Assembly: GCA_964035545.1 (NCBI GenBank)
Contig: OZ037769.1
Coordinates: 5,747,929 to 5,811,928, forward strand
Reading direction: 5' to 3'
DNA length: 64,000 nt
DNA from: Bugula neritina
Lineage: Eukaryota > Animalia > Bryozoa
The position numbers and the translations under genes were made by a program. This document shows positions 34,943 through 36,042 of this stretch, piece after piece (positions within the stretch are counted from its first letter, which is position 1; each line of letters begins with the position of its first letter). The notes beneath the pieces were generated by a model. It saw only the letters and a list, made by a program, of their open reading frames with translations, did not search any database and was not told where the DNA came from.

Positions 34943-35176
34943 ATATATATATATATATATATACATATATATATATATATTATATATATATATATATAAT
35001 GTGTAAGATATATAATATACATATATATATATGTATATTACATATCTTACACATTATATATATGTATATATATATATATATATATATATTATATATATAT
35101 ATATATATATATATATATATATATATATATATATATATATATATATATATATATATATATATATATATATATATAT
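34943..35176. repeat. (TA)n microsatellite, left flank of retrozyme
   Basis: Long TA run with a degenerate middle; explains the IY-repeat ORFs 34999-35292 and 35031-35303. Confidence 0.95.
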
Positions 35177-35181
35177 CTCAA

Positions 35182-35228
35182 TCTGTGGACAGCAGCTGTT
35201 TCGGGATTTGTCCCCTCATCAGCACAGA
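35182..35228 (-). ncRNA. type I hammerhead ribozyme (copy 1)
   Basis: Minus-strand RNA UCUGUG-CUGAUGA-GGGG ACAAA UCCC-GAA-ACAG CUG CUGU-C^-CACAGA: intact CUGANGA/GAAA/GUC core with stems I, II and III; cleavage predicted between 35188 and 35187. Confidence 0.93.
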
Positions 35229-35452
35229 ACAGAGTACCATGGCCCACACCTTCGCAATAGTAAAACTTATAGTTTTACTAAAGCATATTTAAAAGGTGTG
35301 TAAACTCAAGCCAGAGTGCTCAAGTGACTCTAGGGGTCACCTAGGAGTCACGAGCATTGCAAAATGCTAGCAGCTTGAGTTTGTGACCATGGTGAGAGTG
35401 CTCAATCATTTAATGTCATTGATGAGCATTAAATGAGAGCGTAATATCTCAA

Positions 35453-35499
35453 TCTGTGGACAGCAGCTGTTTCGGGATTTGTCCCCTCATCAGCACAGA
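35453..35499 (-). ncRNA. type I hammerhead ribozyme (copy 2)
   Basis: Same sequence as copy 1; cleavage predicted at 35459/35458. Confidence 0.93.
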
Positions 35500-35723
35500 A
35501 CAGAGTACCATGGCCCACACCTTCGCAATAGTAAAACTTATAGTTTTACTAAAGCATATTTAAAAGGTGTGTAAACTCAAGCCAGAGTGCTCAAGTGACT
35601 CTAGGGGTCACCTAGGAGTCACGAGCATTGCAAAATGCTAGCAGCTTGAGTTTGTGACCATGGTGAGAGTGCTCAATCATTTAATGTCATTGATGAGCAT
35701 TAAATGAGAGCGTAATATCTCAA

Positions 35724-35770
35724 TCTGTGGACAGCAGCTGTTTCGGGATTTGTCCCCTCATCAGCACAGA
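35724..35770 (-). ncRNA. type I hammerhead ribozyme (copy 3)
   Basis: Same sequence as copy 1; cleavage predicted at 35730/35729. Confidence 0.93.
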
Positions 35771-35994
35771 ACAGAGTACCATGGCCCACACCTTCGCAAT
35801 AGTAAAACTTATAGTTTTACTAAAGCATATTTAAAAGGTGTGTAAACTCAAGCCAGAGTGCTCAAGTGACTCTAGGGGTCACCTAGGAGTCACGAGCATT
35901 GCAAAATGCTAGCAGCTTGAGTTTGTGACCATGGTGAGAGTGCTCAATCATTTAATGTCATTGATGAGCATTAAATGAGAGCGTAATATCTCAA

Positions 35995-36041
35995 TCTGTG
36001 GACAGCAGCTGTTTCGGGATTTGTCCCCTCATCAGCACAGA
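35995..36041 (-). ncRNA. type I hammerhead ribozyme (copy 4, lacking the distal stem I extension)
   Basis: Same core; the element ends at CACAGAA directly into (TA)n; cleavage predicted at 36001/36000. Confidence 0.9.
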
Positions 36042-36042
36042 A

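Follow-up and report, generated by a model that had tools for sequence, protein, structure and literature searches.

We analyzed a stretch of 64,000 nucleotides (nt) from the bryozoan Bugula neritina (assembly GCA_964035545.1, contig OZ037769.1, positions 5,747,929 to 5,811,928 of the forward strand; hereafter the window). Positions 35173 to 36042 of the window hold, on the minus strand, a tandem array in which every unit carries a hammerhead ribozyme (HHR), and which we interpret as a recent insertion of a retrozyme, a non-autonomous element without long terminal repeats (LTRs). Tandem Repeats Finder (TRF) returned a period of 271, 3.2 copies, 100% matches, and 0% indels, in line with a first-pass annotation that had described three full units and a partial fourth with an exact period of 271 and no differences. 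On the basis of TRF and unit mapping, the array reads in the RNA sense as a 42-nt 5'-truncated unit (q230-271), three full 271-nt units, and a final 15 nt (q1-15), where q is the RNA-sense position within the 271-nt monomer, counted from cleavage site to cleavage site. The reference monomer occupies 35459 to 35729 on the minus strand, and the other two lie at 35730 to 36000 and 35188 to 35458. The 3' terminal 15 nt, CACAGAUUGAGAUAU (35173 to 35187, minus strand), are joined to (TA)n and include the probable start of reverse transcription, 11-15 nt beyond the cleavage site. The array adjoins (TA)n directly at both sides, with no LTR, primer-binding site (PBS), or polypurine tract (PPT). The target microsatellite on the RNA-sense 3' side (34943 to 35176) was imperfect by TRF and by its sequence, with an 86% match, and that on the 5' side (36042 to 36091) was (TA)25 with a 100% match in TRF. 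The GC content of the monomer was 42.8%.

Hammerhead ribozymes and the genomic family

Direct reading of the minus strand gave, four times, the sequence UCUGUG CUGAUGA GGGG-ACAAA-UCCC GAA ACAG-CUG-CUGU C^CACAGA, with the caret at the cut. The invariant core (C3 U4 G5 A6 G8 A9, G12 A13 A14, A15.1-U16.1, and C17) was complete in all four copies. It is joined by helix I (UCUGUG/CACAGA, 6 bp), helix II (GGGG/UCCC, 4 bp, loop ACAAA), and helix III (ACAG/CUGU, 4 bp, triloop CUG). Helix I is the open helix, and the topology is therefore type I; it can be extended via a UGU/UU internal loop to CUC/GAG. The core pattern CTGATGA-N6-30-GAAAC matched four times in the window, all within the array, against 0.21 matches expected from shuffles. 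The second, third, and fourth HHRs (minus strand, 35724 to 35770, 35453 to 35499, and 35182 to 35228) are complete, the extended helix I of the second spanning 35719 to 35776. The 5'-most HHR (minus strand, 35995 to 36041, core pattern at 36011 to 36035) keeps the core and the 6-bp helix I; the distal CUC arm that would extend this helix was removed by the 5' truncation. The earlier claim of a complete type I HHR with an extendable stem I in each unit thus stood for the core and the three helices, 4/4, and failed for the distal arm of the 5'-most copy. Recomputation returned the same predicted cuts, at 36001/36000, 35730/35729, 35459/35458, and 35188/35187 for the first to the fourth HHR. The minimum free energy of the 271-nt monomer RNA was -104.4 kcal/mol, compared with -65.3 ± 4.6 for shuffled sequences (z = -8.5), and in the predicted fold helix I closes a long branched rod that leaves the HHR free to form.

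The monomer was then searched for in the genome assembly (216 Mb, 321 contigs). There were 709 first-look candidates and 70 scored matches, the latter at 93-100% identity on contigs C1-C9, and the genome-wide search that the first-pass annotation had proposed for copy number and divergence accordingly found hundreds of dispersed copies. The 40-nt HHR, with up to 2 mismatches, was present in at least 486 genomic copies on all large contigs, and the reversed control gave 0; near-exact HHR copies were 98-100% identical, and the unit accounts for 0.06-0.09% of the genome. Units inside one array differed from each other mostly at 0-2 positions. Divergence was ~1.1% per site within arrays and ~1.5% between arrays, a small gap in a sample biased to the best-scoring copies. 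The locus is therefore one copy of a young, dispersed family. A 25-mer from the HHR had no match in the full-text searchable literature or in JGI metagenome contigs, and as far as these two sources go the retrozyme seems to be a new sequence family. Its assignment to the short-tandem metazoan non-LTR retrozymes, made in the first-pass annotation, agreed with every sequence-level feature that could be tested. A unit variant of the family that is 10 nt shorter was seen at C2:4680986-4681286, where two identical 40-nt HHRs are spaced 261 bp apart instead of 271.

All three full units of the array share a T at q37, which gives the apical hairpin loop UCAA, while the majority loop is a GNRA loop, GCAA. 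Across the genome, 107 copies have the G form and 4 the T form, of which the one outside the array is a single-unit insertion (C1:3359287), 100% identical across q12-271. Such a single-unit copy has only one HHR and cannot release unit-length RNA. On the simplest reading, the array at 35173 to 36042, or an unassembled sibling of it, would be the source of the C1 copy, and the q37-T lineage would have given at least two very recent insertions, as its sequences suggest. The three identical units with a rare variant, matched at 100% identity at one other locus, bear out the earlier view of a very recent insertion from an active family.

Insertion junctions

To describe the ends of the element we used 30 insertions, namely 23 independent loci oriented in the RNA sense and 7 further insertions in loci L032-L034 and L068. 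The 3' junction ...CUGUC|CACAGAUUGAGAUAU-(TA)n was found in 23/23 of the loci and in 6/7 of the further insertions (29/30 in all). The distance from the ribozyme cut site to this fixed 3' end can be given only as 11-15 nt, since AUAU merges into (TA)n; target-site duplications (TSDs) are unreadable within the microsatellite. The 5' ends, by contrast, were variable (q3, 4, 6, 12, 43, 73, 90, 98, 102, 127, 145, 168, 188, 197, 228, 230, and ~255-267) and were mostly preceded by (TA)n too. This pattern, constant at the 3' end and variably truncated at the 5' end, is characteristic of target-primed reverse transcription. Because the insertions run from q15 through q1 into q271, the template must have been continuous across the cleavage site, as either a circle or an uncleaved multimer; by this evidence a cleaved linear monomer would never have served as the template. 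The 5' junctions were enriched at q2-4, q6-8, and q10-12, and 4/21 multi-unit arrays start at or before q12 where ~1 was expected, a post hoc observation in a sample biased toward long matches. The enrichment possibly arises from run-off at the ribozyme-cut 5' end, or from integral turns that stop at the AUAU microhomology.

Two retrozyme hairpin motifs stand 82 bp apart in -/+ orientation at C3:22926137-22926256. Their spacing implies a putative head-to-head retrozyme twin whose 5' ends meet at ~q1, the ribozyme cut site; if confirmed, this twin would be an in vivo footprint of self-cleavage, with reverse transcriptase (RT) running off a ribozyme-made 5' end. The 3' ends of the retrozyme and of the Penelope-like elements (PLEs) described below were repeatedly seen in one (TA)n tract, often 100-300 bp apart (L010 5' flank, L032 right flank, and L068:1700-1800), and long TA microsatellites would appear to be shared landing pads that gather nested or inverted insertions.

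The surroundings of the array contain two further features. Inside the left (TA)n tract lies a TA-rich near-perfect palindrome with 46-nt arms (34981 to 35026 and 35027 to 35072, 96% complementary) that includes AATGTGTAAGATAT and the inverse of AATGTGTAAGATAT; it could have formed by a hairpin-mediated rearrangement of the microsatellite, or from two abortive insertions, of ends only, by another element that targets (TA)n. Minus-strand open reading frames (ORFs) at 27484 to 28515 and 30113 to 30463 encode a 343-aa Ser-rich protein and a 116-aa protein with a transmembrane-like segment. Both have the orientation of the retrozyme RNA and are located downstream of the array in that sense; a host gene to which they may belong as exons could include the array in its transcription unit or promoter region.

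A co-resident Penelope-like element and a common hairpin

Other HHRs were sought with a pattern that leaves out the helix II of the retrozyme family. Further HHR families were found, often as outward-facing inverted pairs, and these distinct families keep the core while helix II changes with its complementarity retained. They sit at the 3' ends of ORFs of ~706 aa, inserted in (TA)n and often arranged as head-to-head twins. At one such locus (L065, C8:10553800-10559200) two HHRs bracket a head-to-head pair, both outer ends of which lie in (TA)n. The twin (L065:1011-4563, corresponding to C8:10554810-10558362) has an uninterrupted 714-codon frame on one strand, which ends ~100 nt before its own HHR, and a 320-codon C-terminal fragment on the other strand that ends likewise; one arm terminates at a short 3' end and the other at a long ('tail') 3' end. 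The ORF family comprised 885 candidates, each with an HHR after it, in several subfamilies at 45-52% identity. Its copies are mostly 5'-truncated and reach the C-terminus, and 4 keep an uninterrupted frame, at 95-100% identity. Of ten ends joined to (TA)n, 7/10 were the short end and 3/10 the long end, ~70 nt further on.

Profile searches said little about the encoded protein. The whole protein had no significant Pfam match and its C-terminus a GIY-YIG match of only 14.6 bits, a 20-sequence profile had no match among PDB sequences, and Pfam on 20 members returned no relevant family. The homologues are uncharacterised animal proteins of ~700 aa with PF26215/PF28514 and sometimes PF01541. Searches of the genome with the Pfam models were set aside as a means of finding the element: GIY-YIG returned one locus, probably a cellular gene, the PLE endonuclease being too divergent for the model, and RVT_1 was swamped by RTs of the LINE and LTR types. 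Structure prediction was more informative. An AlphaFold2 model of the protein (pLDDT 86.7, pTM 0.84) had as its best match the telomerase reverse transcriptase (TERT) of Tribolium (E = 2.8e-9), followed by the Candida, Tetrahymena, and human TERTs. A TERT-like fold is as expected for a PLE RT. The model of the C-terminal 155 residues (pLDDT 83.4) aligned to the I-TevI catalytic domain with Z = 9.0 and an rmsd of 2.4 Å over 94/97 residues; T4 EndoII gave Z = 8.1, the UvrC GIY-YIG domains Z = 6.2-6.3, and unrelated folds Z <= 3.3. Foldseek on this domain alone gave weak E-values, and it was re-alignment with VIA-align that decided the GIY-YIG fold. The consensus protein has the motifs listed for the Hydra clade of PLEs by Craig et al. 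(PMC8557442), namely RWK, DKT, a CxCX5C linker, no CCHH in the endonuclease, and CxxC/CxH around a conserved E and N, the L065 copy having RWA and DKS in place of RWK and DKT. Short single-ORF elements, canonical HHRs, and (TA)n insertion are further features of that clade. From the motifs and the modeled fold, rather than from a phylogeny, the co-resident element is placed as a probable Hydra-clade PLE with a TERT-like RT and a GIY-YIG endonuclease.

Very short fold-back insertions of one PLE subfamily, PLE1, were also observed (L067:~5750-5900, L068:~5820-5970, and L069:~5940-6150). In these an inverted HHR abuts a forward HHR about the axis ...agccact|agtggct..., and only the ribozyme and tail were copied, on both strands. 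By analogy, they are consistent with the both-strand priming seen with an Anolis PLE in vitro.

The retrozyme and the PLEs have a signal in common. The retrozyme RNA contains a bulged hairpin at q19-59 (35671 to 35711, minus strand, with copies at 35942 to 35982 and 35400 to 35440), a candidate RT-recognition signal that consists of a GCUC stem, an apical loop, a 2-nt 3' bulge, and a closing GAGC, followed by ACU. The motif TACGCTCT stands at q16-23 (35707 to 35714), right after the 3' junction, and GAGCACTCT stands at q56-64. Directly 3' of its short end PLE1 reads ...TACGCTCT-loop-AGAGCACTCT..., and TACGCTCT...GAGCACTCT is the hairpin base common to the retrozyme and PLE1. The RNAs of the retrozyme, PLE1, and PLE2 all have the same bulged hairpin architecture just 3' of the 3' junction or short end. 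The retrozyme hairpin was calculated at -18.4 kcal/mol (z = -4.4), and the shorter hairpins of PLE1 and PLE2 were not significant (z = -1.3 and -1.9). We estimate, without a computed statistic, that chance is a very unlikely source of an 8-mer and a 9-mer that both elements have in one order, equally far from the insertion end, and flanking one and the same structure. The PLE subfamily that acts on the retrozyme would most plausibly be PLE1, which is favored by its identical motifs and intact copies. Whether the retrozyme has captured the RT start signal of a Hydra-clade PLE, such that with a start beyond the cut site only a re-ligated circle or an uncut RNA could be copied, we regard as evenly balanced. 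If so, this would be the first sequence-level cis-signal and the first specific partner clade for the mobilization of an animal retrozyme. It would also explain why every insertion longer than one unit starts with two HHRs around a full unit, and it would make the array at 35173 to 36042 a candidate live source locus, sharing its rare variant with a single-unit, daughter-like copy elsewhere.

Template, alternative explanations, and known systems

Taken together, these results make it rather probable that a non-autonomous non-LTR retrozyme was recently inserted here, copied into (TA)n by the co-resident Hydra-clade PLE through the following cycle. The array would be transcribed from the minus strand and the transcript cut by the HHRs, two of the three monomers being bounded by complete ribozymes and the first relying on the truncated 5'-most HHR. 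A host RtcB-type (tRNA-type) ligase would close the RNAs into circles, by analogy with the scheme of Cervera and de la Pena (PMC7229834). The PLE GIY-YIG endonuclease would nick (TA)n and the PLE protein would bind the bulged hairpin, with cDNA synthesis beginning at the AUAU that immediately precedes the hairpin, 11-15 nt past the cut, possibly helped by pairing with a TA primer. The RT would then pass the cut or ligation junction for one to several rounds and stop at a variable point. Such a cycle would give the structure that is observed, in which a 5'-truncated unit is followed by 1-4 full units and 11-15 nt, all in (TA)n. With the start just 3' of the HHR, a full unit in any insertion of more than one unit is flanked by two ribozymes, so that the insertion can become a new source. 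Continuity of the template across the cut is read directly from the junctions, and the anatomy of the array, its fixed 3' and variable 5' ends, the target and hairpin in common with the PLE, and the nature of the PLE protein are likewise observed; cleavage in vivo, circularization, the PLE subfamily at work, and the choice of a circle over an uncleaved multimer as the template are what we infer.

RNA was approached through public sequence runs, which were examined as contigs, from which strand, ends, and circles are not readable. Nine studies had runs with the unit, and they covered two organisms as well as biofilm and symbiont metagenomes. The only RNA library on record, an oligo-dT metatranscriptome (X20), contains a 220-nt contig that spans a cleavage site at a depth of ~9, and three further libraries guessed to be RNA contain the unit. 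In a random-primed run labelled RNA-Seq (X10) the unit made up ~2.5% of the letters by summed word depth, against its 0.06-0.09% of the genome, a comparison in which the word depth is a poor measure, copies in the genome are counted as a minimum, and a silent control stretch is lacking. This excess is suggestive only. High RNA levels have been reported for other retrozymes, and the excess would agree with these; DNA carry-over may also contribute. The joint at which read contigs go back 271 nt simply reflects tandem or circular periodicity. The unit was also present in a run labelled with the second organism (0.77 of sampled words) and in the biofilm and symbiont metagenomes (X18, X2, X7-X10, and X20), and the host or close relatives thus seem, from these sequences, to occur in fouling communities.

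Several observations weigh against PLE-mediated copying of a self-cleaved retrozyme RNA. At the Rfam gathering threshold the array had no hammerhead call, so that the Rfam scan suggested in the first-pass annotation did not return the expected match; under permissive settings the best scores were 26.4 and 15.2 bits for RAGATH-1-hammerhead (cut-off 56.3) and 12.8 bits for Hammerhead_3 (cut-off 48.5). These sub-threshold alignments nonetheless agree at every core base (in the third HHR, positions 25-77 of the RAGATH-1-HHR model match all of them), and the motif was judged by its direct anatomy instead, the threshold being a criterion of model fit and not of biochemistry. No extra conservation of the HHR was detected among the genomic copies, with 6 variants in 49 sites versus 29 in 222 for the rest of the unit; such equal variation is as expected for young neutral copies, and the copies of the family thus do not demonstrate selection on its ribozyme. 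The one exception among the 30 junctions, a minus copy at L034:1200-1487 (C4:12590999-12591286), reaches at least q27 and joins non-TA DNA, either through a post-insertion deletion or from a rare alternative start site. The contigs of the RNA runs cannot show strand, ends, or circles, and the X20 signal is of low depth and may be DNA carry-over. A vertebrate PLE used unprocessed RNA in vitro, where HHR activity was not needed, and a circle is accordingly not required (PMC11167929). The number of units at the locus is taken from the assembly alone. Lastly, outside the HHR core and the hairpin-base motifs, blastn-short detected no similarity of the retrozyme to the bodies of the PLE copies at hand. 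This absence rules out a simple internal-deletion derivative of those PLE copies, and the retrozyme is therefore better described as a parasite that carries the signal.

The alternative that survives best keeps the same element and the same PLE machinery and differs in the template, which would be an uncleaved or partly cleaved linear multimer of the donor array, with circles as a by-product. We consider this possible, if less than even. The junctions demand only a template that is continuous across the cleavage site, and with the vertebrate PLE in vitro unprocessed RNA was the dominant substrate and HHR mutants had no effect on insertion (PMC11167929); the slight excess of 5' ends at q2-q12, post hoc and from a biased sample, could likewise be run-off at a ribozyme-made end of a partly processed multimer. 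Against a linear template, multi-unit arrays with 0 differences and a rare variant in all of their units fit rolling-circle copying of one molecule, the class accumulates mostly as circles in other animals (PMC7229834), and a canonical HHR with a 6-bp helix I should cut efficiently and leave few uncleaved multimers. A different enzyme is improbable. Mobilization by a LINE-type non-LTR retrotransposon with an APE or RLE endonuclease would draw on the many LINE-like RT ORFs in the genome with strong RVT_1 scores, and Cervera and de la Pena left LINEs as open candidates (PMC7229834). The retrozyme, however, has no poly(A) or LINE-like 3' tail (LINE 3' ends were not compared), and its target, the internal start after the HHR, the partial-tandem architecture, the head-to-head pairs in one (TA)n tract, and the hairpin motif match the co-resident PLEs. 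Just as improbable is an assembly artefact in which a repeat between two microsatellites was mis-counted as a three-unit tandem. Identical repeats between long (TA)n tracts are hard to assemble and the unit number was not verified with long reads, but many other loci show arrays of this design with 1-5 units, contigs of 33-35 Mb suggest long-read data, and an error would alter the unit count and not the nature of the element. Finally, an ordinary satellite or minisatellite, grown by local slippage or unequal crossing-over and with an incidental or fossil HHR-like motif, could account for the perfect tandem identity by recent local duplication, as well as for the lack of a significant Rfam match and of extra HHR conservation, but it is largely refuted by the junction analysis and very improbable, given the retrotransposition signature of hundreds of dispersed short arrays that end in one 3' junction, are variably truncated on the 5' side, and lie in (TA)n, the 486 occurrences of the full 11-nt invariant core with three helices against a control of 0, and the distinct HHR families that keep the core while helix II varies with its complementarity retained.

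That PLEs mobilize retrozymes has been proposed before, and the locus itself is an ordinary, very young copy of a known kind of element. To our knowledge, retrozymes are the only known route to abundant small ribozyme-bearing circular RNAs from animal genomes, and we know of no experiment that has yet shown how they move. The metazoan non-LTR class, with a proposed circular RNA-templated tandem cDNA, was described by Cervera and de la Pena (NAR 2020, PMC7229834), who also proposed mobilization by PLEs. In Xenopus, retrozymes are related to PLE pLTRs, with phylogenetic support in vertebrates (10.64898/2026.07.22.740005). Hydra PLEs carry HHRs and target (TA)n (Craig, Yushenova, Rodriguez, and Arkhipova, MBE 2021, PMC8557442), and the RT of a PLE starts internally at two sites, which define the 'tail' (Frangieh et al., Mobile DNA 2024, PMC11167929). 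The class, the idea of PLE mobilization, and the HHRs and (TA)n targeting of Hydra PLEs are thus already published; what the B. neritina genome adds is a clean set of junctions and a common hairpin that ties one retrozyme family to one PLE clade. The family is young and homogeneous, of moderate copy number, and housed in a compact genome with apparently intact partner elements alongside. With its fixed start, (TA)n target, and PLE-common hairpin, it offers a good system for testing target-primed reverse transcription of circular RNA by a PLE enzyme.

Among known systems, the closest are the metazoan non-LTR retrozymes of Acropora millepora (220-240 nt), Mytilus galloprovincialis (350-390 nt), and axolotl (PMC7229834). 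Like them, the B. neritina element has short tandem units (170-400 nt there) with one type I HHR each, no LTR, PBS, or PPT, a GC content below 50%, many dispersed copies, PLEs in the same genome, and a highly self-paired monomer in which the HHR is free to fold; it differs in being a new sequence family, in its short arrays (1-5 units) targeted to (TA)n, and in RNA forms that are as yet predicted. Like the Hydra-clade PLEs (PMC8557442), it prefers (TA)n as a target, has an HHR close to its 3' end, and occurs as 5'-truncated copies, partial tandems, and inverted twins; with the co-resident PLE1 it has in common the hairpin-base motif just past the PLE1 3' end. Unlike those elements it has no ORF, its HHR differs in helices I-III, and no other sequence is common to the two, which marks it as a parasite and not a member of the clade. 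In the Poseidon PLE of Anolis carolinensis (PMC11167929), too, reverse transcription begins inside the RNA, at defined sites that lie a short way downstream of the HHR cut and adjoin a stem-loop; AT-rich targets and twins from priming on both strands are further points in common. Its two start sites explain the 'tail', and the two PLE 3' ends in B. neritina match this tail and the two start sites that were shown biochemically. Poseidon starts 111-118 nt into the ORF, at an AC-rich stem-loop without homology to the target (PMC11167929), whereas the start here lies 11-15 nt after the cut, where an AUAU stretch could pair with a (TA)n primer.

More distant are newt satellite 2 and Schistosoma Sm-alpha, which carry a type I HHR as well, within tandem or SINE-like repeats a few hundred nt long, and which are transcribed into unit-length RNAs. 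They have no sequence relationship to the B. neritina element, which occurs in hundreds of copies and short dispersed arrays as opposed to tens of thousands of copies, and its helix III of 4 bp with a triloop contrasts with the very weak helix III of the newt motif, which needs dimers. The plant LTR retrozymes (Cervera et al., Genome Biol 2016, PMC4918200) are similarly non-autonomous and use HHRs for circular RNA intermediates, but they are 600-1000 nt long, carry type III HHRs within LTRs together with a PBS and PPT, generate 4-bp TSDs, and are moved by Gypsy LTR elements.

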